The notes: generated by a model not told the origin, from the sequence alone. Shown: positions 3,451 through 58,971, numbered from the stretch's first letter. The stretch: DNA of 64,000 nucleotides from Trichosphaerium sp. ATCC 40318 (GCA_038496445.1 JALMLS010000589.1:124001-188000); one strand, 5' to 3'. Numbers and translations: made by a program.

Positions 3451-6400
3451 TTACAATGCACATCTGCATGAACAATGTGCTGATACTCTGTTATTTACTC
3501 TTCTTGATGAAGTGCATGATATAATTGCTGACTGGCCAGTGTATCTAATAGCAACACAACACCTAAAGAGGAAAAAAGTAAGAAAGACAATACATTACAG
3601 CTGTAGCCTTCGTACCCTTGGCAATCATTTTCTGCTTTTGTTAATGCTTCCCTAGTTGCTTCATCATCGTCTTCAATCGTTGATTGTCCAAAACCAAGCA
3701 AAACAGGACGCTACATATGTAAGTCAAAGAGTCTTTAGTAATTTTTTGTACCCTAACAGAAGAAGGCGCTGAAGTTACTGGTGCAGGCGTAGCAGGTTCA
3801 AACGTTGGTGATTCAACAGGTGCTTGTACTGGTGGAGAAGTGATTGGAGCATCAGATGGAGCGGTACTAATAGGAGTATCGCTTGGTGGAGAAACGGTAA
3901 CGGGAGTGTCAACTGGAGCGACTGTGACTGGCGCCTCAGTAGGTGTTTCAGCAGGAGCATCAGTAGGAGAATCAGTAGGAGTATCACTTGGAGGAGACAT
4001 GGTTACAGGAATGTCAACTGGAGCGGCTGTGAATGGCGCCTCAGTAGGAGTTTCAGCAGGAGCATCACTAGGGGCATCAGTGGGGGTGTCAGTCGGTGCC
4101 TCTACGGGTGGTTCTAAATCCTCATTAATTCGTCAAGTATTGTACTATGTTTATACCAGATGGTTGTAATGTTGGTGCTTCCGTAGAAGTTGATGGTGTT
4201 AGGTTTGCAGGAGAAAGTGTTGGTGGTGTAGATGATGGTTCATCAATGGGTGGTTGTGACATTGTTGGTTCAACTGTTGGTGCATCTTAGAGTGTTAATA
4301 ACGCTGTTAAAATATAAGATATTTCTTGTACCTGTTGCAGTAGGAGAAGCAGTAGTTGGTATCACAACAGGAGCTGACGTTGGTGTAGGTGTAGGGGAAG
4401 CAGTAGTTGGTATAACAACTGGAGGTAGAGTTGTGGGTGTTGTTGTTGGTGGTTCTGTTGTAGGTGTTGTAGTTGGTATAACAACTGGAGGAAGAGTTGT
4501 GGGTGTTGTTGGTGTTGGCTCAACTGTGGGAGGAATGGTGGTAGGTACGGTGGTAGGTGGTGGCGTTTGATCCGTAGGAGCTATTGATGGCTCATCTGTA
4601 GGCGCTGTAGTTGTAGGTACAATAGTAGGTGGTGACGTTGGTATAGGTGTAGGGGAAGCTGTAGTTGGTATAACAACTGGAGGAAGAGTTGTGGGTGTTG
4701 TTGTTGGTGGTTCTGTTGTAGGTGTTGTAGTTGGCGCCCTTGTTGGAGGTTGAGTTGTGGGAGACGCCGTTGGCGGTTCTGTTGTGGGAGCGAGTGTTGG
4801 TGCTGCGGTTGGTTCAACTGTAGGAGGAACGGTGGTAGGTACAGTGGTAGGTGGTGACGTCGGTATAGGCGTGGGGGAAGCAGTAGTTGGTACAACAACT
4901 GGAGGTAGAGTTGTTGGAGGCATTGTTGGAGGTTGAGTTGTAGGAGGCTCTGTTGGGGCTGGTGTAGGAATTGGAGTTGGTGCGTCCGTTGGCGTCATTG
5001 TTGGGGGAACTGTTGTTGGTTCTCTTGTTGTAGGAGCTACTGTGGTTGGGGATCTAGTTGTTGGTTCTCTTGTCGTAGGTGCTACTGTAGTAGGAGCACG
5101 TGTTGGAACTTGAGTAGGTGGTAGTGTTGTAGGACTACGTGTAGGTGCTAGAGTTGGAGCCACGGTGGTTGGCGAGCTGGTTGTTGGTGGAAGTGTAGTA
5201 GGAACACGTGTAGGAGCTAGAGTTGGTGCCCTTGTTGGAGGAATGGTTGTTGGTTCTCTTGTTGTAGGAGCTGCAGTCGTAGGTGGAAGTGTGGTAGGAG
5301 TTAGTGTAGGAGGGAGAGTGGGAGGGAGAGTTGGTGCTCTTGTCGGAGCTGCTGTGGTTGGAGATCTAGTAGTTGGTTCTCTTGTCGTAGGTGCTACTGT
5401 AGTAGGAGCACGTGTGGGAGCTACTGTGGTTGGAGATCTAGTTGTTGGTTCTCTTGTAGTAGGTGCTACTGTAGTAGGAGCACGTGTGGGGGCTGGAGTT
5501 GGTGCCCTTGTAGGTGATGCGGTGGTAGGAGGTCTAGTTGTTGGCATTAATGTTGGTGGACTTGTAGGAGTTCTTGTTGGAGGTGCGGTAGTCGGAGGTG
5601 GTGGTGGCGTGGTTGTCGGTACACTCCCTGCTGTAGGATTTTGTGCTACCTGTATACATGTGAGTACAGTGAAGCGGATTTAGTGACTGTACTGGTGATA
5701 TTTGAATATTGAGATACGTGTTACTAGCTTGAGAACCAGATCTGATTGCCATTCCTGATAGTCTTCTATTTGAAGGGAAAGATGGTACAACACATTCCTA
5801 TAACGTAATCTAAGAACATAAAGTTGCAATCATTCATTAAAATTTGATGTGGTTTTGAAGTACTAAAAGGGTTTGCACAATTTCTATGTCCATCAGATGG
5901 ATAAAAGTAGATTACAGTTGTTTGGTAAAAAAACCCTGAAACGTACGACATATGAAGGGGTAATCAGCCTTGGGATTCCTGTGATTCCAGAATCACCGCC
6001 AAATAAACATAACACTTCTTCAAGAAAGTAATATCCACGCACACCTATAGTATCACCGATTGTTGCAAAATCCCTGTCAGTGTATGAAACATATGGACAT
6101 GGAAGTCCATTTGCTAAATTATTTTTGTTATTCGGCTGGTAATGTATTTACAACGAAGACCTCAGTTACATACCGTTAATAAACCATCCAAGGGTATTGA
6201 TGACATGTATATCTTCTGGAGTAATGGTAAGAATCGATTCTGGAGTAATATCATCCAATGGAGCAATAATACCTTAAGAAGTGAGTTTTAGCTTTTTTGT
6301 TACTTAGATGCATACCAACGCTCTCATCTTTCCAGTTATCTTGTTGTCCACGTATAGTTGAATACTCAGAAGTAGGTTGTCTTGTTAAAGCACTTATAAA

Positions 6401-8470: not shown

Positions 8471-8762
8471 TTATTTTGAAAGGTGAAGTATTGCTGGTCT
8501 AAGCGCAACACAAGCAGTACTGGTGCATCTAAATCCTGCTGGGCAACAGTTCATTCCATCAGAGCAGCAAAAACCGTGATCAAACCCACAACATCCGTAA
8601 CCACCTACATTATACATCAATATAATTATATCGTGCGGTTGTACCTGTTCGCAGTGGGCAGCAAGTATCTTGAGGAGGACACGCGTATTGAGGGCATACA
8701 AGATCCTTACAGCTCACGACCATAATCAATACGGCGATAGCAAAAAAGACATTCATTTTCAT
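8471..8762 (-). CDS. secreted single-domain granulin
   Basis: Signal MKMNVFFAIAVLIMVVSC; removing a 40-nt intron (8605-8644) gives the 12-Cys granulin pattern CPQYACPPQDTCCPLRTGGYGCCGFDHGFCCSDGMNCCPAGFRCTSTAC. Confidence 0.9.
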
Positions 8763-8906: not shown

Positions 8907-11900
8907 TTATTGAATAATTATATTAGCTACGTCCACCTCATGTTTACTATGACATAGATAAACAGTAGTATTCTCATAATTTTCTTTTTCTCCTCCGAAA
9001 TTAGTGAACACATGAACATGTACTATTATTGGTCTTTCAAGTTTTTCAGGTATACTATGGAACAGCTTTGTTTTAACTGTATATGTTCCTCTAGGCGCTT
9101 CGGCTATAGTATACTCTACAGGTCCATACCCTATGAAGAATTTAGTATTTCAAGAAATCTTTAGAAAAATGAATGAGATGTACCTTTAACATCATCGGAG
9201 AGTACACCACCGCTCATCGTATTGTTTTTTAATGGTTGACATATTTCACCTGTAGGTTCAACAACATGTAACTCTACATTTGATAGTGGACAATTCCATG
9301 TAATAACAACCCTAAAAAAACAACGCTAAGCGAAAAGTAGAAAAAAAAAAAGTCGCTGTAATTGTACCTGATGTCGTAGTTAACTTGACGGCTTGATATA
9401 GAAGATAAGTGTGCATTATGTTCTTTGACCCAATGATCTAATTCAACAAGTTGTTTATACTTGTCTGTACGAATCAATTTCTGCCGAAGTGCCAAGTAAT
9501 CATTCAATGCAATCATAGAAATAGAATGAGCGAATCGCGCATCCCAAGCGTCAGTAAGAATCTTAATTAAGTTCTTTCCTGCTTCGACATAATCTGAAGA
9601 AGACAGAAAAACACCCAAGTCCCTAACAAGTATAAGATAAGCTAAGAAAACGCAATAGTACGAAAAGAAAAACCAGACTTTCGACTTACCAAAATACGAG
9701 CGGTTGCTCTTGACGCATCTCTGTGAGCTTACTATATAAATACCCAGTAATTTTTTTGGTATTCACATCGTTGCATGAGTGTAGTTTCCATGTAAGTGCA
9801 CGGTATTTCTTGTCATTATCTATATCGTCTTCAACAAGCTTTGAAATCACATTGATCGCTTGCTGAAAGCAACCATCACTTTTGTATTCATCAAATTTAG
9901 CCTGGAATTAACACACAAGAAGTTAGCGTTACAAAAAAAAAGGATTAACAAATCACGTGACTGTGCTACTTGAAAAAAAAGCGGAAAAGGTTTGAAAGGA
10001 AAAGATCGTACGAGTGTGTTGTTGATGACTTGTTGTTGATCATTGTTAAGATTTTGTTGTAATATCGTTATATACTTATCCGCATTTGTAAGAGACATGC
10101 AAGACATATCGCTTGACAAATCTATGTCATTTTCCATGATTTCATCAGCAAGTTCTTCGTCCTGTTCTTCATCCATTTTAGTAACTAGACTTGTACTTAC
10201 TTTTCTTCTCTTCTTTCGTTTTCTTTCTGGTTTGTTGCGTTTACTTTCATCCTTCTTTTCCCAATTCAATGGACTCGCTCTAGGTTTATCTATGGCATGG
10301 CTTAGGTTTAACATTGGTGATAGTGTTACTGGAGTACCTATAGATACAGGCGCCGACAGGTATACAGGAGAGTATGTTGGTGAGGCTGGTGAGTATGAAG
10401 GAGACGCTGGTGAGTATCCTGGTGACGTTGGTGAATAAGATGGCGAAACCGGTGAGTAATTAGGTGATGTTGGTGAGTATCCTGGTGACGTTGGTGAATA
10501 AGATGGCGAAACCGGTGAGTATTTAGGTGATGTTGGTGAGTACGATGGTGATACTGGTGAGTATGATGGTGACGCTGGAGAGTATCCTGGTGATGTTGGT
10601 GAATATGATGGTGAAGCCGGTGTGTAATTAGGTGATGTAGGAGCATAAGATAGCCTTGTTGGTGAGTATGGTGGTGCATTATAAGCTGCGGTAACAAATC
10701 CAGTAGCTTTACCTGCCTTCTTTTTCTTCACTTTTTTCTTTTTCGATTTCTTTGTACTTGATGCTGACGTCTTTTTAGGAGGCTTTACATCTGTTTCATC
10801 CGTATCAAAGGTAAATCCTTTGCTACTAAATCCACGACGTTCGTTTGGAGGAGCTAAAACAATTAAGTTAGGTCTAGAATTTGTAAATATTGCTTACCTA
10901 TAGAACCAAAACCGGGTGTCTTTAGCTTAAAAGCGCTGCTTTGGTTACCAAAGCCTGTATTACTTCCAAAAGTTCCTCCTTGGCTTTGTTGTGAATCACC
11001 AAAGCTGAAGCCTGCGCTACTGCCAAAGCCTCCAACACTTTGCCGCTGACCAAACCCACTGGTATTTTTACTCTCACAGTTCTCACCAAAGCCTTGGCGT
11101 TCTGAACTACCAAACCCAGATGTGAGTCTGCTGTTGTTACTGGACCCAGAACCAAACCCAACTGTGCTTGGTGGGTTATTACTTGCTGTGGCCAAGCCCA
11201 GAAACCTTCGTGGTATGCCACGCGCTTTTTTTAGATTTCTCTTGGGTGTTTGGGTTTGTGAAGCTAAGAGACTTGAAAGGCTCTCAGGTGTATCTGACTC
11301 GGTGCCATGGATTTCAGCTAATCTAGCAGCGCCGTAATTACGTCTGTTGCCATAATTTCCACCTCGACCTCTTCCTCTGCCTCGGCCACCTCGACCACCA
11401 CCTCGACCACCACCTCGGCCACCTCCTCGGCCACCTCCTCGGCCACCTCCTCGGCCACCATGTCTACTTCTGTCTCTGCCAATCCAATTGTTTTGTCTTC
11501 CTCCTCTAGAACCGCCCCAGCTTTCTTGGCTTGGATAAATTCCTTCCTTCTCTTTGTTGTATTCAACAGAACGCAAACTAGGTATGTTAACGTGTTGCAA
11601 ATAAAATGAAACAAATAACATACTCCTTAGCTCTTTCAGCTGATCTTGACCTAGATCGTGACTTAGACTGAGCAATTGACATGCGCTTTCGTAAATGTGA
11701 GCGAGATCTACTTCTGCTATTTCTGTCTCGCCTTCGTAACCTTCGCGAACGAGACCGCTGTGGTGATATACTCATAGGAGAAGGTGATCTCCTTCTACCG
11801 TATGTACTATGTTGCTCTGTGTTGGCATAAGTGCCTCCTTCTTCTTCACCGTCAGAGCTATCATGATGTGAATATCTCGAATCTTGCCAGCTATCACGAC

Positions 11901-14900
11901 GGCTGCATCTTTCACTCCTTCTGTAGCTTGTATTTCTATCTCTAGCTCTATCTCTATTTCTTCTTCGGCGCCTATTGGATGGTGCAGAGAGTTCTCGTTG
12001 GGCTTCTTTGTACTTTTTTTCCATCTCATTAACTTTTTTCATATCCAGGTGGTTTAGCGCCTCCTCTTGATTAGCATCTCCAAAGATATCAGTGCGTTGA
12101 GCTGAAAAGGTTTTAAGTGATGTGACCAGCTGAGATAGAGCTTCTTCTTCTATTTGTGGTGATGGCTGATTGCTTGATAAACGTATAAGAAGGTGTTGCA
12201 TTTCACTACCTATTACTGGCCATTCTACTTGGGAACATTCTTCATTTTTTCTTTTGCGATTAAGACGAAGAGATTCCTTTGTTATCTCATAATCAGCTTG
12301 ATTTTCATAAAATGTATCATTGAATCTATCATTTTGTTCTAAGCTAAAATGAAGCATCTTGAAAGAAAGTCAGGTAATCTTCCGGAAGGAAAAAAAAGAC
12401 CTTTTTCTTCAAAAATTACAATGGTGGACAGTTCGTATCATATTTAAGTGCAGTGAAATGTCTTTGTCAAAAGCCATTTACTACAATGTCAAGGATACAA
12501 CATTGAGATAAAAAACAGTGTACGTACTTGTTTTGCACTTCTAGACATAGATGAGAAGCTACTGCTAGAACCACCAAATCTTTTTTCAAATAACGATAAA
12601 ATAACATTCATTTTCTCTTTTTGCTCATCCAATTCTTTCTCCTTGATAGCGTCTTCTAACTGAAAGTATTCATGCCTATCATAAGGAGTTAAATAACGAC
12701 AAACAGAATCACGTGAAAAGCACGTGCTAGTCCAAAAATAAGACGAACCTCATATTAACTAAAGATTTAGGCGGAGGTACTCTGTGTTTGACGTATTGAT
12801 CAAGAGATTCAAGAACAATCATAGAAGTCAAAGAAGTAACAACGTTGAATTTCTTACTAAGTGAAATAACTTCAGCCTAAAGTAAAGAAGTACAGTAAGT
12901 AAAAAGAGAAACAAAAATGAGATGTGATATTTCTTACTTTCTTCTTTTCATCTTGATCGCTGATTTGTAGTTCCTCAATACGTTTCTGCGCCCAAGTCCT
13001 TTTAAGCGCATCGTTTATTTCACATGGAACCAATTCTTCTAATAAGCACGTCGTTGTATGCTTAACAATACCAGAGACACCATAACTAATCTTAATAGAA
13101 GCATCTACTGGCATTGAACTATCATTAACATTCGTCAACTCTATTTTCCCGGATACAATCATACTATCACCCTCAACAGGAGTACATAAACGCGGTACTA
13201 CTAAAAACACAGTTAGTAAAACAACTAGAAAAAGAGATTATCCACAGTACCGTTAAACAACCTTCCTTGATCGCATTGAATATCCATAATACTGAGAGGT
13301 TTTGTTTTGTTTGAAATTGCATTGTACAACTCATTTACACCGTTGGATGCCGTTGATGTGATAAGCGATCCTCCGCTCTTTTTAGCCCATGTTTTTAATA
13401 AAGTATCATTCACCCTAGCTCCAGTACTGCATATATACGCTGTACGAGCAAACGAAGGAATATAATTGGCTGAACCAAGAGTATTTATACCATCAGTACA
13501 AATGAGAAAAGATGTGTACTTTGTTTTAGTGTCAGAAAGTAACGGCTCAAGGCATTCAAGACATGTTCCTCCCTCGCATGGTTTCGATAAATACTAAGCA
13601 AAGTAAGTAACAATGAAGAAATATAAAGAACACTTGAGGGTGGTTGCTCAACTCCTTTGAAAGCAAAAAAAAAAGATGAAACCCTTTCTCGTACGTTTAG
13701 GACTTCATCGCTGCCACTACATATATGCTTTGCAGATAGTGATGCATTGAATGTATAAACATCAATGTCTCGTAATCCAAGGCGATCTAGGGCAACAGAA
13801 ATAATGCAAAGATCTTTTTCTGTATTGCTTCTACTTCCGGAGTTATCCCAAATTATCGCCAAGTTCATATCTGAATTTTGCATGGAGGTTGATCCTTGTG
13901 ATTTAAATTTGCTTGGTATAAGGTCTTGTATACAGAAATAAAACGATTCATCATTGTTTTCAGCGCTTGCTAACTTAGTACTTTGAAGGGGAACTATGTC
14001 TTTTGTAGAAAGCGAGATATCAATATTGCAACCAGTTAAATCAATGTTTTCCTTTGTATACGCATAAGCTTGCTTATCATCTCCTTGTTTAGAAAACTGT
14101 GACGTTATTTTATCTCTCTTAGAGGTAAAAGAGATACGTGGATGCTTCTTGGTCAAAGGGATGTGGAATAGTGTAGCAGACAAGTTAAACTTTGGTACAA
14201 TACCAGAAATAGGGATTGGTAACGACCATGTCGCTTTATATTTCTTTGTACCTACATAACGCATTAGTATAGTACTATACTATTGTAATTAGACGTCATT
14301 AAAAAAAATCAGAAAGTAGTAAGAACGGAAAGTTACAATCAACAAAATTCAATGAAAAAAACGTTTCCAAAATTTTTCTGACACCAACAATTACAACGTA
14401 CTCTCTTTGTATCCCACGGTATTTGATATTGTCAATTGTATTGTACGTTCTGCACGTGCTTTTGTTTTATTGATTTTAGTCTTAAAAACGTTACCCACTA
14501 CCTTGTCAACAAGTGCAGCTTGAGTTTTGTTGAAAGAATGTGTTTCGGTTTCAAATGCCTTTCGCGCTTTCTCTTTTTCTACTACTACAGCATCTACGAG
14601 GGTACCGTTTATATCCACGGCGTATCTGACCACTTCTGCACCTGTTGTTGAAGCGTTAACGACAAATGGTGTAAAACGTATCTATTGCTTGTAAATGTAG
14701 TCACATACCTACAACTAGCGGAAATTCGAGCTCTGCTTCAACAATTGGCTCGTTACTGTCGTTAATAAAAACAAGTTCAACGTTCGTTTCTAAAACGCTC
14801 GTCAGAAGTATAACTACGTACAAATAGCGTTACCAGCCAAGAATGAGTCTATTGTAACTTGTACAGAACACGACACGCATTTGAGTTTGCGTGTTGTACT

Positions 14901-14927
14901 ACAACAAACCAAAGAGACGTTGCTCAT
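8907..14927 (-). CDS. VIT + vWA-like + RS/RGG/FG/CTD-heptad disordered region + TPR-like + DUF2135 (YfaP-like) protein
   Basis: VIT: [26 protein letters not shown]...GNVFKTKI. vWA-like: [11 protein letters not shown]. Post-vWA helix: [11 protein letters not shown]...[26 protein letters not shown]-terminus: [16 protein letters not shown]...[25 protein letters not shown]...[26 protein letters not shown]. The join across 12358-12527 is the least certain part. Confidence 0.8.
10354..10668 (-). repeat. 15 in-register RNA Pol II CTD-like heptads (YSPxSPx)
   Basis: [105 protein letters not shown] in ORF 9847..10731. Confidence 0.97.
11360..11460 (-). repeat. RGG box encoded by a 12-nt tandem repeat
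   Basis: ccacctcctcgg / ccacctcgacca units translate to [34 protein letters not shown]. Confidence 0.95.
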
Positions 14928-21938: not shown

Positions 21939-22895
21939 ATGACAACTAAGCGCATCACACGTGTTAACACTCTTATCTCGGAAGCCAAAGAGTTGTTTTC
22001 GCTGCCTATAGAGATACTACAGAGTATTATCGTCAATAACGGCCTTTCATGGCAAGATTTAGCTTCTCTACAACAATCAAACCATTTTATGGATGATGTG
22101 ATACGACACGACTCAGATTACATTTATCGACAATTGTACCATCAGAAATGGGGAACTGACGCCGAAGAAATAGAGTCTACTGTCCACCAACATGTTGTGA
22201 GAGATTTCCAATATCAACAGTCCATTGTCCCCAGTTACATGCTAGTAAGTAATCAAATGATGCCATCAACAATGTACAATGTTAAACCAGTCACGTGGAA
22301 AGAGAAGTATCAAAACAAACTTGTTCCAAACGTCATCGCAGAGTTAAGTTGTGACACGAAACATGTTTACAAAGGACAAACAGTAACATTCACACTAACA
22401 CTTGAGAATATTGGTAAAACAGAAGAGATGGTATACCTTGGTAGTGCACCAAGTGTTGATGAATATCATTTTATTGAAGGTGGTGGTGCTGTTTATATTT
22501 GGAAACCTCTTGTCAGCAATCCAGATGGGTTGCTCAACAATTACAAGATCAAACACTACCTACCTGGATCTTTTGATGCGGAAACACTTGACTTTAATCA
22601 TAAACTGAAACCAGGAGATAGACATACTTTTCAAATACCATTACTGTTTGACAAATATAAGCCAAGAGGATATGGATATCCTCAGGCATCTTATGGTACA
22701 CTATCTCTTCAGGGCAAAACCTCTGAAGTTTACGTTGCTTGCAATGAAACACCAGATGTGTTTCCTCTTCAAGTATTTGTAAATGTCTTTACTTTGAGGG
22801 AGCCACAAAAAGGTCCTTTTGGTACTATTTTTGGACATTGTTCAGTAGTTACAAGCAATGTTGTAAACCTTACAATGTACAAGACATCAAAATAA
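21939..22895 (+). CDS. intronless F-box protein with an uncharacterised beta-rich C-terminal domain (family A)
   Basis: LFSLPIEILQSIIVNNGLSWQDLASLQQSNHF...TWKEKY; clear paralog of 48922..49770. Confidence 0.85.
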   Translation: MTTKRITRVNTLISEAKELFSLPIEILQSIIVNNGLSWQDLASLQQSNHFMDDVIRHDSDYIYRQLYHQKWGTDAEEIESTVHQHVVRDFQYQQSIVPSYMLVSNQMMPSTMYNVKPVTWKEKYQNKLVPNVIAELSCDTKHVYKGQTVTFTLTLENIGKTEEMVYLGSAPSVDEYHFIEGGGAVYIWKPLVSNPDGLLNNYKIKHYLPGSFDAETLDFNHKLKPGDRHTFQIPLLFDKYKPRGYGYPQASYGTLSLQGKTSEVYVACNETPDVFPLQVFVNVFTLREPQKGPFGTIFGHCSVVTSNVVNLTMYKTSK

Positions 22896-25886: not shown

Positions 25887-26184
25887 TATGAGGTGTTGTA
25901 GTACGTTGTGACAGTTTCTTAATTACTAATAGGAGTTGCGACAAAGTCTCATGAACGTAGACAAAATTTTTAGCTAACCCAAAGTAGTTCATACAAATTT
26001 CAGGAGTTGTGATATTAGCCATGATTTGTAATGTAGAACGCAAGAAAAAGACATAGATAAGGGATTGCAGGGAGGCATCTTTAGTCAAAACGTTGGTTGG
26101 GTAATAAAATACGAGAGTGCGTTTCCTTAAAAGCATCACATTTACAAATCTTAAGTCCAAATTTCCCTCTAATACACAACCAGT

Positions 26185-26258
26185 GCTCGGGTGGCTCAGT
26201 TGGTTAGAGCGTCAGTCTCATAATCTGAAGGTCGTGGGTTCGACCCCCACCCTGAGCA
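26185..26258 (+). tRNA. tRNA-Met(CAT), elongator type
   Basis: Acceptor stem GCTCGGG/CCTGAGC-A; D arm GCTC..GAGC; anticodon arm TCAGT-CTCATAA-TCTGA with U31-U39; GTTCGA T loop; followed by a T-run. Confidence 0.97.
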
Positions 26259-26395
26259 TGTAACCTTTTTCCTTTTTTTACAACCTTATGTTGCTTTACG
26301 TATGCTATGTCATCAACGTTTGAGTACATTGCGCTATTGTTTTGGAGACAAAATTGATGCTTGGATACGTTAGATTATTTTATTGCTTGGTTTAA

Positions 26396-43153: not shown

Positions 43154-43285
43154 GAGAAGTGATGCGATATTGATGATAATAATAAAATCTATTGGTTTGC
43201 GTCAATCAACTAAAGGTCAGAGGCTTGATTGATATTCGAATTTTACAAACTGGTAGGCCCAATTTCGCCTAGTTTCACAACCAGT

Positions 43286-43359
43286 GCTCGGGTGGCTCAG
43301 TTGGTTAGAGCGTCAGTCTCATAATCTGAAGGTCGTGGGTTCGACCCCCACCCTGAGCA
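43286..43359 (+). tRNA. tRNA-Met(CAT), identical second copy
   Basis: Identical to 26185..26258, sharing flanks cacaaccagt and tgtaacctttt. Confidence 0.97.
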
Positions 43360-43601
43360 TGTAACCTTTTTTGTATTTTGCCTTGTAACATGCGTTGTTT
43401 TTATGTCGGTTGTGCTTCTTTTTGTTTTGGATTATGACCTACATTTGAGCTTTACACTTCTGTTTCCTTGTAACCATGTACGTTGCTTGTGGCATTTTCC
43501 GATAAAATTTGCTTGCAAAAGTTTGTGGTATTACCTGAACCCCAAAAATCTTAAACATTATTTCAAATCATCTTAGCAACGAAACGTATAATAGCGTTAA
43601 C

Positions 43602-44261
43602 ATGTCGGCGCTTATATTGTTACCAGTGGAGCTACAGTATGCGCTTTACATGTACGATGCACAACTATACAAAAAATGGCCTGCGCTTTGCTATCAAACG
43701 TCAGTAACATCACGGTTTAACTCTTTTCAAGAAAAAGAGGGCGTTTGGCGAAAAACGTTAAAAACGGGTAAACTGGTTCAAACAACCTTTAAAAACGATG
43801 AACGGGATGGAAAACATACAGAGAGCATTAATGGACGCTTAATATTTAGTGCCGAGTACAAGGAGGGCAAACTTGACGGAATAACCGAAAATTGGAATAA
43901 AAACGGAATTCTAATCAAACGATTGAGGTACTATAAGGGAGAGCTTGATGGTGAGCAGACTACATGGAACGACAAAGGAGAGCTTGAAGAACGTAAGAAC
44001 TACAGTAACGGCACGTTACACGGCACTTGGGAGGTATGGAAGAACGGGAAAAGACTGTTTGAAAAAACTTTTAAAAACGGGAGGATTCATGGACCTTTCA
44101 AGTGTTATTATGATGGTAAGCTTTTAAAAAAGGGAAACAAGATTAAAGGGAAACTACATGGTGCTTATAGAGAATGGGATACCGATGGAAACTTGATAGG
44201 ATTCTGTCAGTTCAACAAAGGATTAGTCTCGAATGAAAAGAGATCCCTTGATGTTTTTTGA
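43602..44261 (+). CDS. intronless MORN2 (YwqK-like) repeat protein with F-box-like N-terminus
   Basis: LILLPVELQYALY N-terminus; repeats YKEGKLDGITENWNKNG, YYKGELDGEQTTW, GKLHGAYREWDTDG. Confidence 0.85.
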   Translation: MSALILLPVELQYALYMYDAQLYKKWPALCYQTSVTSRFNSFQEKEGVWRKTLKTGKLVQTTFKNDERDGKHTESINGRLIFSAEYKEGKLDGITENWNKNGILIKRLRYYKGELDGEQTTWNDKGELEERKNYSNGTLHGTWEVWKNGKRLFEKTFKNGRIHGPFKCYYDGKLLKKGNKIKGKLHGAYREWDTDGNLIGFCQFNKGLVSNEKRSLDVF

Positions 44262-45235: not shown

Positions 45236-46551
45236 ATGAGTTCTCCTTCTCACCAGGTAATAGGAGCCAACAAAGTGTTGCTTTCTAATAACAACTTAAG
45301 GTTTCCGAAACATTGAAGCACTGCTACCTACTAAACAGCCTTCCCTCTGAGATTAAACTAGATATCATTGATTTAGACCCTGAAGTGTATTTAAAGTGGC
45401 CTATCTTATCAAAACATACAGCGCTGACAACAAGATTCGATGATGACATGAAGAGACATGGTAAGTGGCGGAAGTATAGAGTGATTACAAAAAAAGAAAT
45501 CAATGTAATGGTAACCAAAACCCTGCTCATAAAACAGCAATATTGGAAGCACGGTGAAAAAGAAGGAGAATGCAAGAGGTGGCATTTTAACGGACAATTA
45601 CACGAGAAGTATTACTTTGTCAATGGGAATAAAGAAGGAGAGTTCAAGAGCTGGACCAGAAAAGGTCAAATAATGGAACAGTACTATTTAGTAAATGGTA
45701 AACGAACAGGAGAATGTAAATCTTGGCATGATAATGGTCAATTAGAGGATCTTTGCTATTACACAGATGACAAGCTTGATGGAGAAAACACTTATTGGTC
45801 TAGAAATGGCCAAGTAACCTTGAGATGTAACTATTTAAATGACGAATTTGAAGGACAGTACAAAGCTTGGTATGAAAATGGCCAATTGAAGCAGCAGTTG
45901 TTTTATGTTAATGGTAAAAGAGAAGGAGATTACTTAAGTTGGCATAAAAATGGGGTCCTGTGGGAGAAATTTGTGTTTGTGGGTGATAAAGAAGAAGGCA
46001 CTGGTACTGAGTGGTATGAAAATGGGCAGATAAGACGACAGTGCTATTACGCTAATGGTAAAAGAGAAGGAGAGTTTAAAGGTTGGTACGATAGTGGCGA
46101 ATTAGAGCATTGCCTTTACTATGTAAATGGTAAACTTGAAGGAGATTATAAGCGTTGGTACAAGAATGGACAATTGTCAGAGCTACATCACTACATCAAT
46201 GGTAAACGAGAAGGAGAAATGAAGAATTGGTTTGCCAATGGGCAACTAAGCGTGCAATGTTTCTACAAGAATGGCAACAATGTAGGTGAGTTCAAGTGTT
46301 GGCTCAACAATGGACAGTTGTCAGAGCTACATTATCACGTGGATGGTAAAATAGACGGAGAGATGAAGAAATGGCACGAAAATGGGCAAATACGCTTGCA
46401 ATGCTATCACAAGAATGGTGTACCTGAAGGAGAGTGCAAGGAATGGTATGAGAATGGCCAAATGTGCGAGCATGTTGTTTATGTCAGTGGTACTATTGTT
46501 AAACAATCACACTGGGATATGGATGGTAATTTGTTGGAATCAACGCCTTAA
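45236..46551 (+). CDS. MORN2 repeat protein with F-box-like N-terminus
   Basis: ATG 45236 plus a 44-nt GT-AG intron (45257-45300) joins in frame to ORF 45313..46551; LLNSLPSEIKLDII; about 13 repeats of the type YxNGKREGExKxWYxNGQ. Confidence 0.9.
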
Positions 46552-48921: not shown

Positions 48922-49770
48922 TTATTCTTCTTTTTTATGCTTGTACATGACAAGATTTACAAAGCTGCTGAGGACTTGTAAACAGTGTTCGTCAATGCTT
49001 CCATGATCCTTCTTTATTCTTAATGTTGCTAGTAGTGTAAGAGGAAACACATCAGGTGTCTTAGTATTAGCAACATAAATATCTGTATATTTACTTTGAA
49101 GAAAAAAGATATCTGACAGAACAACGTATTGCCAAAGTGATGGATTTAGTTTGAATGTGTCAAACACGAAATGTACTTCATATGTTTGTATGTCACCTGG
49201 ACTCAATGTAATTGTAGGGCTCTTAAACGGTTGTTTAGGATAGTGCTTCCTATTTTTGAGAAACTTATGATTTGCTTTGATTTTAGGCTTCCAAATAAAT
49301 ATAGTACTATCAAAGTTAATGCCTTCAATTGTTGTAGAACCAAAACTACAGCCGAAACAAACTTGTTCTGGTTGTTTACCAATATTTTCAATTGTAAGCT
49401 TGACTGTAATTGTATCGCCTTTATGAACATGTGTCTTGTCACAACTCAACTCTGCAATGATGTTTGGAACAAGTTTGTTTCTATATTTTTCTTTCCACGT
49501 GATTGGCTCAATATTGTAGATCGTTGGTGAGCTTAGATCTATCGGTAATCTCGGTTCTATATCTAGGTGGACGGCAGACTCTGCTTCTTCAGCGCCTTTA
49601 CCCCATTTACGATGGTATAAACCTCGATAAATGTAATCTGAGTTGTTTCGTATCATATCGTCCAGAAAATGGTTTGATTGTTGAAGCGAAGCCAAATCTT
49701 GCCATGTCATGTTGTTTCTCACGATAATACTCAAAAATATCTCAACAGGTAACGAAAATATGTCAGTCAT
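48922..49770 (-). CDS. intronless F-box protein, family A
   Basis: IFSLPVEIFLSIIVRNNMTWQDLASLQQSNHF; paralog of 21939..22895. Confidence 0.85.
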   Translation of the reverse strand: MTDIFSLPVEIFLSIIVRNNMTWQDLASLQQSNHFLDDMIRNNSDYIYRGLYHRKWGKGAEEAESAVHLDIEPRLPIDLSSPTIYNIEPITWKEKYRNKLVPNIIAELSCDKTHVHKGDTITVKLTIENIGKQPEQVCFGCSFGSTTIEGINFDSTIFIWKPKIKANHKFLKNRKHYPKQPFKSPTITLSPGDIQTYEVHFVFDTFKLNPSLWQYVVLSDIFFLQSKYTDIYVANTKTPDVFPLTLLATLRIKKDHGSIDEHCLQVLSSFVNLVMYKHKKEE

Positions 49771-52460: not shown

Positions 52461-53567
52461 TTACCTAGGATCACACTGTAGATTGTCTATAACTTCCTGT
52501 ACACCAATCAATGATTTAATACCCTCATCTGTTATCCCATCACAAAAACTAATGCTGATAGTATGTACTCCTACTAATACCTTGATACCGTTATCTGTAA
52601 TGGATTCACAACCAACAAAACTGATAGTATGTACACCCGCCAACGCTTTTAAACATTCATCTGTTACTTTTGTACATGATAGATCAATGCTATGTACACC
52701 AGCCAAAAGCTTCACACCCTTATCAGTTATATTTAAACATTGTTGTAAGCTGATAGTATGGACACCTATCAACGCTTCCAATCCTTTGTCTGTCACGCAA
52801 GTAGATGCTAACTCAATATGATGTACTCCTTTTAATGCTTTGATTCCCTTGTCTGTTATCTTGTAACAACTATTTAAACCGATAGTATGTACACCTGCAA
52901 AAGCTTGCAGGCATTTATCTGTTATGTTTGAGCATCCTAAATCAATCTCGTGTACTCCAGCCAAAAGCTGTATGCCCTTATTTGTTATTTGAGTACAGTT
53001 ATACAAGTTGATAGTGTGTACACCAACCAATGCCTTCAACCCTTCGTCTGTCACGTTGGTTTGGCAAAGATTAATGTTATGGACACCACCCAATACTTTG
53101 ACCCCTTCATCTGTTACTGAAGTGTTTGCAAGAGAGATTGTATGAACACCAGCCAACAATTTAATAGCTTCATCCTTAGCTAGTGTATACGAAATGTCAA
53201 TAGTATGGATACCAGATAATTCTTTAATGCACTCGTATGATAGATCACGACACATACTATTGATATAAACAGCTTCTGAAAGGTACATCTTAACGTGTTT
53301 TGGTTTCAATACACACAGCAGCTGGATTTCGACTTTTGGTATAAGTAAGGGACATGACTTAAATAGCTTCCGAAGTCGTTTTTTGTTTCTTATTATAACT
53401 TTGCGTCTGATTTTTGTGTTGTATTTCATGTAATCTTGTACTATACGAGCGAATAGAGTACATGTTTCGCTTACAGGTTGTATACAGCTCGTACAAACGA
53501 AATTAAGTATTAAAACCCATACCTCGATAGGTACAGCATCAACGATATGATTAGATCCTTTATCCAT
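52461..53567 (-). CDS. intronless F-box + LRR protein (GVHTIxL..T.VTDEG.K.L repeats)
   Basis: DAVPIEVWVLILNFV...VSETCTLF F-box followed by about 11 regular 22-23 aa LRRs. Confidence 0.9.
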   Translation of the reverse strand: MDKGSNHIVDAVPIEVWVLILNFVCTSCIQPVSETCTLFARIVQDYMKYNTKIRRKVIIRNKKRLRKLFKSCPLLIPKVEIQLLCVLKPKHVKMYLSEAVYINSMCRDLSYECIKELSGIHTIDISYTLAKDEAIKLLAGVHTISLANTSVTDEGVKVLGGVHNINLCQTNVTDEGLKALVGVHTINLYNCTQITNKGIQLLAGVHEIDLGCSNITDKCLQAFAGVHTIGLNSCYKITDKGIKALKGVHHIELASTCVTDKGLEALIGVHTISLQQCLNITDKGVKLLAGVHSIDLSCTKVTDECLKALAGVHTISFVGCESITDNGIKVLVGVHTISISFCDGITDEGIKSLIGVQEVIDNLQCDPR

Positions 53568-57904: not shown

Positions 57905-58971
57905 ATGTCCGTGGCACAGGTTACCACACTTCAAAGATTGCCATCAGAGATACTCACGCTCATTCTCCGGTTTCTTGGCAAAAAGCAGCGCATTCTGGCT
58001 TGTTTAGTGTCACAGCGAATTAGAGCTGTTATTCGCAATAATTGGCTTTCAAAGTAAAAACTGAAATCTGCATCCGATTTCAGCGTTCTCAAAGGTAATC
58101 CATTGCTATCAAACACCGAAATCGTCTGTAGAGGTTTACGAATGTCAGAAAACGACATAGCTAGCCTTTGTGGTGTTCGTACAATAGATGTACGAAGTAC
58201 AACGATTACTGATGAACATATTCTCAAATTAGTTGATGGAGGCAAACACACCATTCATAACATTAATCTAAGTCATACTCGTATAACAGATGTATCACTT
58301 ACAGCACTAAAAGGTGTTCATACTATTGATCTGGAAGCATGCAAAGGACAGACGAGGGTATCAAAGCACTCAAAGGCGTTCATACTATTTCCCTTGGTCT
58401 CACAAACGTTACAGATGCAAGCTTAAAAGTACTAAATGAAGTACATTCTATTTCTCTTTATCATTGCAAATACCCAACAGATGAAGGTTTAAAAGCACTA
58501 AGAGGTGTTCATACTGTAGATATTCATGGTTGCTCTAATATTACAGATGAAGGCCTTAAATCGCTTGTGAAAGCGCACATAATTACAATTGGTCAATGTC
58601 CACGTGTTACCATTGAAGGAATGAAGATATTAAAAGATATTCATAAAATAGTTCTCAGTTTGTCAACAGATGAAAAAATCAAGCAATTATCTAATGTACA
58701 CACTATTTGTACTTCTGGGATGGGTGTTACAGATGATGGCATTAACTCATTGATAAATCTAAAGCACTTAAGGTTAGTTTATTGCGCTGTTACAAACTCA
58801 GGTCTTAAACCTTTGGTCAATCTTGAACACTTAGAGTGCTATGGGTGTCCCAAGATTACTAATGATTGTTTACAATACTTGACATCCGTCAACAGCATCA
58901 GTATTGGTGGTAAACGCTCCATTACACAAGAAGCTGTTGAGGCCATGTGTATTCAATATTTTGAGCTGTAG
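57905..58971 (+). pseudogene. F-box + LRR gene disrupted by an in-frame TAA (58055-58057) and a frameshift (about 58345)
   Basis: LQRLPSEILTLILRFL F-box; GVHTI LRRs continue across three ORFs of the track. Confidence 0.8.

Follow-up and report, generated by a model that had tools for sequence, protein, structure and literature searches.

A predicted Trichosphaerium gene with RS, RGG, FG and Pol II CTD-type heptad tracts between the folded modules of a bacterial-type VIT/vWA/TPR/DUF2135 protein

A 64,000-nucleotide stretch of DNA from Trichosphaerium sp. ATCC 40318 (GCA_038496445.1 JALMLS010000589.1:124001-188000; hereafter the window) carries on its minus strand, at positions 8907-14927, a predicted gene whose product would join the two folded modules of a bacterial VIT/vWA/TPR/DUF2135 protein through a long, apparently disordered insert. 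The insert combines an arginine/serine- and arginine/aspartate-rich (RS/RD) tract, an RGG box, FG repeats, two basic tracts and heptads of the type found in the C-terminal domain (CTD) of RNA polymerase II (Pol II). On balance we favour the reading that this is one spliced gene, encoding an intracellular member of an otherwise bacterial, mostly exported family in which the linker has been expanded by three exons. We are confident of the anatomy of the protein as described below. That it acts as a nuclear scaffold is a more tentative suggestion, resting on motif resemblance.

Results

Gene model

We linked the minus-strand open frames of this region through GT-AG introns. The resulting model runs from an ATG at 14927 to a stop at 8907-8909, the same start and stop as in a first-pass annotation of this DNA, and consists of 15 exons in one frame of 1642 amino acids (aa) with a single, terminal stop. 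All 14 introns are GT-AG, range from 44 to 170 nucleotides (nt), and leave no in-frame stop in the spliced model. The window as a whole looks eukaryotic, with coding sequence split into short open frames on one strand; its GC content is 0.34-0.40 across nearly all 2-kb bins, with two bins at 0.44 and 0.48. The features of the model are as follows.

8907..14927, minus strand: whole gene model, 15 exons, 14 GT-AG introns, 1642 aa; aligned to the bacterial family profile at 420 bits, through exon junctions in each folded half
14402..14927, minus strand: exons 1-3, N-terminus without a signal peptide, then VIT (residues about 11-135); Pfam VIT on exons 2 and 3, profile aligned from node 32, hydrophobicity 1.63
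13251..13889, minus strand: exons 4-5, vWA (residues about 260-438) with intact metal ion-dependent adhesion site (MIDAS) motif (D-x-S-x-S, Thr, Asp)
12528..13200, minus strand: exons 6-8, end of the N-module (beta region, 'TS.IVLE..DY....PPP' motif, helix), then a Ser-rich tail; from the profile alignment, with the helix after the PPP motif at residues 568-601
12358..12527, minus strand: intron 8, 170 nt, the only junction between N-module and insert; the ATG of exon 9 lies directly after its AG
11624..12357, minus strand: exon 9, acidic helical head (residues 619-745, about 125 residues), then RS/RD tract (746-862; nt 11626-11976); from composition and AlphaFold2
10898..11577, minus strand: exon 10, RGG box (8 RGG; nt about 11357-11520) and FG repeats (9 FG, 7 of them GFG; nt 10907-11159); from motif counts and a 12-nt RGG DNA unit
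10708..10776, minus strand: Lys-rich tract resembling a nuclear localisation signal (NLS), residues 1116-1138; KKKK runs at residues 1127 and 1132
10354..10668, minus strand: 15 in-register Pol II CTD-type heptads (12 perfect Y[ST]PxSPx, 3 degenerate), residues 1152-1256; Pfam PF05001, 63.8 bits
10087..10236, minus strand: Arg/Lys-rich NLS-like tract (residues 1296-1307; RKRKKRRK run at residue 1300), then acidic patch (about 1316-1345; net charge -10 over residues 1307-1345)
9368..9901, minus strand: exons 12-13, TPR-like helical repeats of the C-module; second profile domain from residue 1381, node 729, where the bacterial counterpart has 8 helices
8910..9311, minus strand: exons 14-15, DUF2135 beta-sandwich, split by intron 14; Pfam 18.1 bits on the last exon, tblastn E 9e-5, second profile domain 136.8 bits

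The folded modules belong to a bacterial protein family

Pfam searches with single exons found VIT (PF08487) at 41.3 bits on exon 3 (cut-off 26.5) and at 14.6 bits on exon 2. DUF2135 fell below its cut-off on the last exon alone (18.1 versus 22 bits) because intron 14 splits the domain. No vWA or TPR model matched any single exon of the gene; the Pfam vWA match is weak in bacterial members as well. With the last exon as query, tblastn against plasmids matched the C-terminal ends of bacterial proteins annotated as 'VIT domain-containing', from Aureibacter, Sphingomonas and Deinococcus (E 9e-5). In the Aureibacter and Deinococcus proteins Pfam recognises VIT, TPR and DUF2135, and in the Sphingomonas protein VIT only; among these three, a weak VWA_2 match occurs in the Aureibacter protein alone. 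When the spliced model was compared by blastp with the 1007-aa Aureibacter protein, two blocks aligned in conserved order, residues 4-575 with bacterial residues 15-565 (E 2e-35) and residues 1374-1639 with 752-1000 (E 2e-19).

A family search returned 153 proteins. Among the best 120 of these, the matches listed, lengths are 893-1217 aa, nearly all are annotated with VIT plus DUF2135, and those that are named are bacterial, mostly Bacteroidota, except for one labelled as an archaeon. We used 122 bacterial VIT/vWA/TPR/DUF2135 proteins from this search as a family alignment and profile. Against that profile the spliced model scored 420 bits, with residues 11 to about 603 and 1381-1640 aligned in conserved order, and this full-length match supports VIT, vWA and DUF2135 and, less firmly, TPR, despite the missing Pfam vWA and TPR matches. 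Of the domains read by the first-pass annotation, VIT is recovered by Pfam itself, DUF2135 is recovered as part of a 136.8-bit profile domain, and vWA finds no Pfam match. The alignments also cross 10 of the 14 exon junctions, which validates those ten introns.

The model is identical to the family at 59 of the 93 near-invariant columns (those with 93% conservation or more in bacteria), and all MIDAS residues are kept (D269, S271, S273, T339 and D361 in the alignment with the 122 members); the D-x-D-x-W motif of the family DUF2135 reads N-x-E-x-H here. VIT aligns to profile nodes 32-150, and the part of the profile that corresponds to TPR is covered by residues 1381-1480. The N-module of the family matches the solved VIT+vWA structures of ITIH4 and ITIH1, and PARP4 across VIT. 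For a bacterial C-module, structure prediction gave eight helices of TPR type and then a beta sandwich of eight strands, at a predicted local distance difference test (pLDDT) score of 90; a fold search with it matched TPR structures, and the beta sandwich had a weak TerD-like match only. By sequence comparison, then, both folded modules are homologous to, and ordered as in, single bacterial proteins.

The first-pass annotation had described the VIT...DUF2135 architecture as mostly bacterial and often exported and had seen no signal peptide here, and both points hold. A hydrophobic, signal-like N-terminus (score 2.0 or more) is present in 111 of the 122 bacterial members. In the model, with its N-terminus taken from ATG 14927, the top 10-residue hydrophobic stretch within the first 35 residues reaches 1.63, and the profile alignment begins only at node 32. 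As modelled, the gene product is without a signal-peptide-like N-terminus, unlike most of the family.

A composite low-complexity insert occupies the inter-module linker

Exons 9-11 encode residues 619-1370, 2256 nt or exactly 752 codons, in phase 0 at both ends, and have no counterpart sequence in the bacterial family proteins. At the same site, bacterial members have a linker of 57-348 residues (median 95) that is low in complexity, with abundant Ser, Glu, Ala, Asp and Pro. The linkers of the three plasmid proteins are poly-Pro or acidic, and some members (P0100, P0109 and P0152) have one that spans 279-348 residues with what appear by eye to be folded, beta-rich segments. Judged by this alignment, the insert occupies the family's naturally variable, insert-tolerant linker site, here grown to about 770 residues.

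Its motifs follow one another in the order head, RS/RD tract, RGG box, FG region, Lys-rich tract, 15 heptads, Arg/Lys-rich tract and acidic patch. The RS/RD tract is 30% Arg and 21% Ser, the RGG box (residues 884-945) contains 8 RGG and 12 RG, and the FG region (residues 1003-1087) has its 9 FG in 85 residues, with Ser/Asn/Gln spacers. This agrees with the first-pass annotation, which had listed RS/RD, RGG, FG, Lys-rich and heptad tracts, including about ten GFG/FG repeats at 10900-11170. When the insert was shuffled 2000 times, the observed counts of heptads, RGG and GFG were never reached. The count of RS dipeptides was reached in 979 of the 2000, so the RS tract is a feature of composition and not an ordered repeat. 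Exon 9 matches no Pfam family, and AlphaFold2 run on it as a single sequence returned low-confidence helices for the head, pLDDT below 50 for the RS part, and a predicted template modelling (pTM) score of 0.20.

Codons of the invariant heptad residues vary almost only at third positions

The first-pass annotation had counted 15 heptads. Twelve of them are perfect Y[ST]PxSPx units, in register at residues 1166-1249, and three are degenerate (starting at 1152, 1159 and 1250). Pfam assigns the array to RNA_pol_Rpb1_R (63.8 bits, cut-off 20.3) in 10 stretches. A degenerate heptad DNA pattern has 13 matches in the window, all at this locus, where 0.04 would be expected. A single exon contains the whole array, which shares its frame with the unique sequence before and after it. 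Among the 12 perfect units, 7 have Ala or Val at position 4.

At the DNA level the array includes a 63-nt, three-heptad unit (3.6 copies, 84% matching). Across the invariant residues (Y1, S2, P3, S5, P6) of the 12 perfect copies, pairwise differences were 1.83 at third, 0.17 at first and 0.0 at second codon positions. Because the copies differ almost entirely at third positions, the motif has been kept at the protein level in this frame; the heptads thus look constrained, which would point to selection.

A search with exon 11 returned mostly RPB1 C-terminal fragments, together with unrelated proteins carrying YSPTSPx arrays. Heptad arrays without an RPB1 core occur in P0182, P0211, P0232, P0239, P0246, P0281, P0192 and P0204. 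The idea that each of these signatures normally belongs to a separate machine, with heptads the property of RPB1, was therefore overstated for the heptads, while the composite region itself is real. A literature search found no paper describing canonical heptad arrays outside RPB1. Such arrays outside the polymerase appear to be a sporadic, undescribed phenomenon that is not unique to this locus.

Splicing of the insert

Introns 8-11, which bound or lie inside the insert, were scored with a leave-one-out splice matrix built from the ten homology-validated introns. All four fall within the validated range (donors at the 90th-99th percentile, acceptors at the 52nd-99th), and in every case a branch-like CTRAY motif precedes the AG by 9-21 nt. 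Read-through at any of the four donors leads to an early stop after junk-like sequence. The heptad exon is therefore tied to TPR-DUF2135 by the splicing of intron 11 in every reasonable reading of the locus. Such splice logic makes a single 15-exon transcript, possibly beside a skipped isoform, the probable product.

Alternative readings

Several observations weigh against one spliced gene with a functional expanded linker. The high identity of the 12-nt RGG and 63-nt heptad units indicates slippage at work and looks recent. Intron 8 is the weakest link in the model: an ATG stands right after its acceptor, and its 170 nt are close to the length of a genuine intergenic gap in the window (145 nt to the next gene). 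Skipping exons 9-11 keeps the frame and could give a bacterial-like protein of 890 aa. The conserved 'W.PD.PYL' segment at the start of the bacterial C-module was not detectable in the model by sub-profile or position-matrix scans, which gave negative scores only; we accordingly rejected anchoring either end of the insert to it. Finally, no ortholog turned up that might show the insert to be conserved: phmmer with exon 4 against 1.84 billion representative proteins gave no close one, although the queries used for relatives, single exons or bacterial family sequences, did not adequately reach full-length eukaryotic relatives.

The main rival, which we regard as a minority possibility but a real one, is that the insert is neutral filler: a tolerant linker expanded by slippage into common low-complexity motifs, in a protein whose folded ends do the work, be it in the cytoplasm or in another place. 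The repeat DNA fits this, with the RGG unit at 95% identity over 6.2 copies and the heptad blocks at 84%, as do an RS count that composition predicts, the variability of the bacterial linker at this site (low in complexity and sometimes with inserted domains), and the presence elsewhere in the window of a 425-aa open reading frame (ORF) of Pro/Thr-rich repeats. Filler would not, however, readily explain why variation among the heptads is nearly purely synonymous at Y1, S2, P3, S5 and P6, why the exact CTD consensus occurs 12 times, why two strong basic tracts flank the array, or why there are five distinct motif classes and not one runaway repeat.

Fission into two genes seems improbable. Exons 1-8 would then encode a VIT-vWA protein ending by read-through at about 12489, and a second gene, starting at ATG 12357, would encode the insert plus TPR-DUF2135. 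That ATG does open exon 9 directly after the proposed acceptor, and the gap between the two genes, about 130 nt, would resemble the 145-nt gap before the downstream granulin gene. But the read-through would add 12 junk-like residues, and intron 8 has a donor at the 99th and an acceptor at the 90th percentile, a branch-like CTGAC 12 nt upstream of the AG, and phase 0 at both ends. Moreover, the bacterial relatives listed (120 of 153; 893-1217 aa) nearly all have VIT and DUF2135 in one chain.

We give slightly less credence still to an optional cassette or nested gene, in which exon 8 is joined to exon 12 in the main product and exons 9-11 are included in some transcripts or expressed separately. 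The whole number of codons and phase 0 ends of the insert would permit this, and the 890-aa product would lie near the 893-1217 aa of bacterial relatives among the matches listed. The skip would need a 2.6-kb intron, however, where all others are 44-170 nt; the cassette alone would end in 54 junk-like residues past an unused donor at 10011; and its internal introns, 9 and 10, are normal.

An assembly or contamination artefact, with a piece of RPB1 tail or a bacterial contig misjoined here, is very unlikely, since nothing specific favours it beyond two long window ORFs without an exact match on record, and against it stand 14 spliceosomal-type introns, a GC content (0.36-0.44) within the range of the rest of the window, heptads in frame within one exon with unique sequence on either side, and eukaryotic neighbours (a granulin gene that has an intron, plus ORFs of Kelch, LRR and MORN type).

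Relatives and origin

The phmmer search with exon 4 gave a single match, P0001, a protein of 3822 aa without any Pfam family, whose sequence contains seven matches to the beta region that separates VIT from vWA (query residues 46-122). Exon 4 is thus a poor query for distant relatives. Scanning bacterial and archaeal genomes with the back-translated last exon confirmed nothing, and exact-sequence look-up of two long ORFs in the window, including one that belongs to this gene, found no called protein on record. In JGI metagenome contigs, exon 5 had one match, in a high-GC bacterial contig, which we rejected as spurious. The family alignment found DUF2135-only matches in viral contigs and no instance of the whole architecture. 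Seven of these contigs, from IMG/VR (L006-L012), carry a DUF2135-like segment on its own (family positions about 880-990), without VIT-vWA.

In a tree of the 122 bacterial members and the model (123 sequences), the model has the longest branch (2.07; median 0.16) and groups with other long branches, and its identity to any bacterial member is at most 28%. Naming a donor lineage was rejected, given that this extreme branch joins other long ones. The bacterial ancestry proposed in the first-pass annotation consequently stands to the extent that both folded halves fall in one bacterial-type family; a transfer cannot be placed on the tree. The gene may derive either from an old transfer from bacteria or from wider eukaryotic inheritance. 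Our literature search found no paper mentioning DUF2135.

Neighbouring loci

Downstream of the gene, at 8474-8762 on the minus strand, lies a small, secreted granulin-domain gene with a hydrophobic N-terminus and one short intron (Pfam Granulin, 39.7 bits). It begins 145 nt past the stop of the gene studied here, so tandem genes can sit very close in this DNA. The 425-aa ORF (4270-5547, minus strand) consists almost entirely of Pro/Thr-rich repeats, is mucin-like, and lies in the 2-kb stretch with GC 0.48, where GC skew is 0.49.

Two tRNA-Met (CAT) genes lie 17 kb apart on the plus strand (26184-26259 and 43285-43360) with equal Rfam scores of 69.1 bits; the second stands just upstream of a MORN-repeat ORF. 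Two adjoining ORFs that look MORN-like by eye (43602-44261 and 45313-46551, plus strand) share a similar N-terminal motif and look like a local family expansion. Clear paralogs of 318 and 282 aa are encoded at 21939-22895 (plus strand) and 48922-49770 (minus strand); apart from an F-box-like N-terminus they show no obvious domain. ORFs with leucine-rich repeats (LRRs) of RNI/FBXL type occur at 52461-53567 (minus strand) and 58339-58971 (plus strand), and the best database matches of the former, none above 51% identity, come from transcriptomes of marine microbial eukaryotes (MMETSP).

Discussion

If the protein is nuclear, it would be imported through its two basic tracts, possibly with assistance from RS and RGG, and the multivalent disordered region could then lead it to partition into RNA-processing or transcription bodies. 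The heptads might be substrates of CTD kinases and phosphatases as well as docking sites for CTD readers, and the MIDAS-vWA and TPR/DUF2135 ends might bind one or more partners, from which we propose that the protein would work as an adaptor or scaffold. The full version of this idea is a nuclear adaptor whose heptads would be written and read by the Pol II CTD machinery (kinases, phosphatases, capping enzyme, and readers with a CTD-interaction domain or WW domain), with RS, RGG and FG tracts placing it in RNA-processing condensates, the folded ends recruiting a partner, and the whole serving as a decoy, buffer or docking platform. Taken with all these parts, it is a doubtful proposition.

RS, RGG, FG and CTD heptad tracts are usually studied singly in condensate biology. 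If expressed as modelled, this gene would be a natural experiment with all of them on one chain, between bacterial-type folded modules. It would let one ask whether a CTD array that is not part of a polymerase is phosphorylated and read, and how it competes with the polymerase's own tail. It would also show how an imported or ancient bacterial-type scaffold was fitted to a eukaryotic cell, by loss of the export signal, gain of introns and expansion of a permissive linker. The gene provides a first eukaryotic handle on the uncharacterised VIT...DUF2135 family, and even if the insert is neutral filler it would illustrate cleanly how large a permissive linker can become.

Comparison with known systems

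The closest comparison is with the bacterial family itself, for example the uncharacterised 1007-aa protein of Aureibacter tunicatorum (WP_309942093.1). Both share the order VIT, MIDAS-vWA, beta/'PPP' region, variable linker, a TPR (here TPR-like) region and DUF2135. The gene described here differs in its 14 introns, in lacking a signal-like N-terminus, in a linker of about 770 residues against a median of 95, and in motifs of eukaryotic nuclear type. The N-module also recalls the ITIH heavy chains (ITIH4 at E 4e-19, and ITIH1, over VIT+vWA) and PARP4 (over VIT), but neither the ITIH C-terminal region nor the PARP catalytic domain is present, and the TPR plus DUF2135 end is the bacterial arrangement.

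With the RPB1 CTD the insert shares in-register tandem YSPxSPx units, in which Y1, S2, P3, S5 and P6 are kept and positions 4 and 7 vary. Here, however, the array is internal and not C-terminal, it is preceded by FG repeats and a Lys-rich tract, and Pfam found no RPB1 core domain in any exon. There is an R/S-rich tract as in SR splicing factors, but no RRM; there are 8 RGG as in RGG or glycine/arginine-rich (GAR) RNA-binding proteins, but no RRM, KH or other RNA-binding domain; and there are FG repeats as in FG nucleoporins, but no known nucleoporin domain, all by Pfam.

Other proteins with YSPTSPx-like arrays include MATH-domain proteins of Mytilus labelled 'USP7' (P0182 and P0211), BTB proteins (P0232 and P0239), a hypothetical protein of Chytriomyces (P0246), and P0281, which has a hydrophobic N-terminal stretch. 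Their similarity to the present protein is limited to the heptads, and none adds RS, RGG, FG or VIT/DUF2135. We know of no functional study of these non-RPB1 heptad-array database proteins.

An experimentally tested comparison comes from yeast, where Trf4 and Sen1 contain short CTD mimics that interact with Nrd1 (PMC4186968, PMC7110113). Those mimics are single short motifs, whereas the array here is a canonical tandem one; Trf4 and Sen1 nevertheless offer a precedent for a non-polymerase protein that shows a CTD-like peptide to a CTD-interaction domain.

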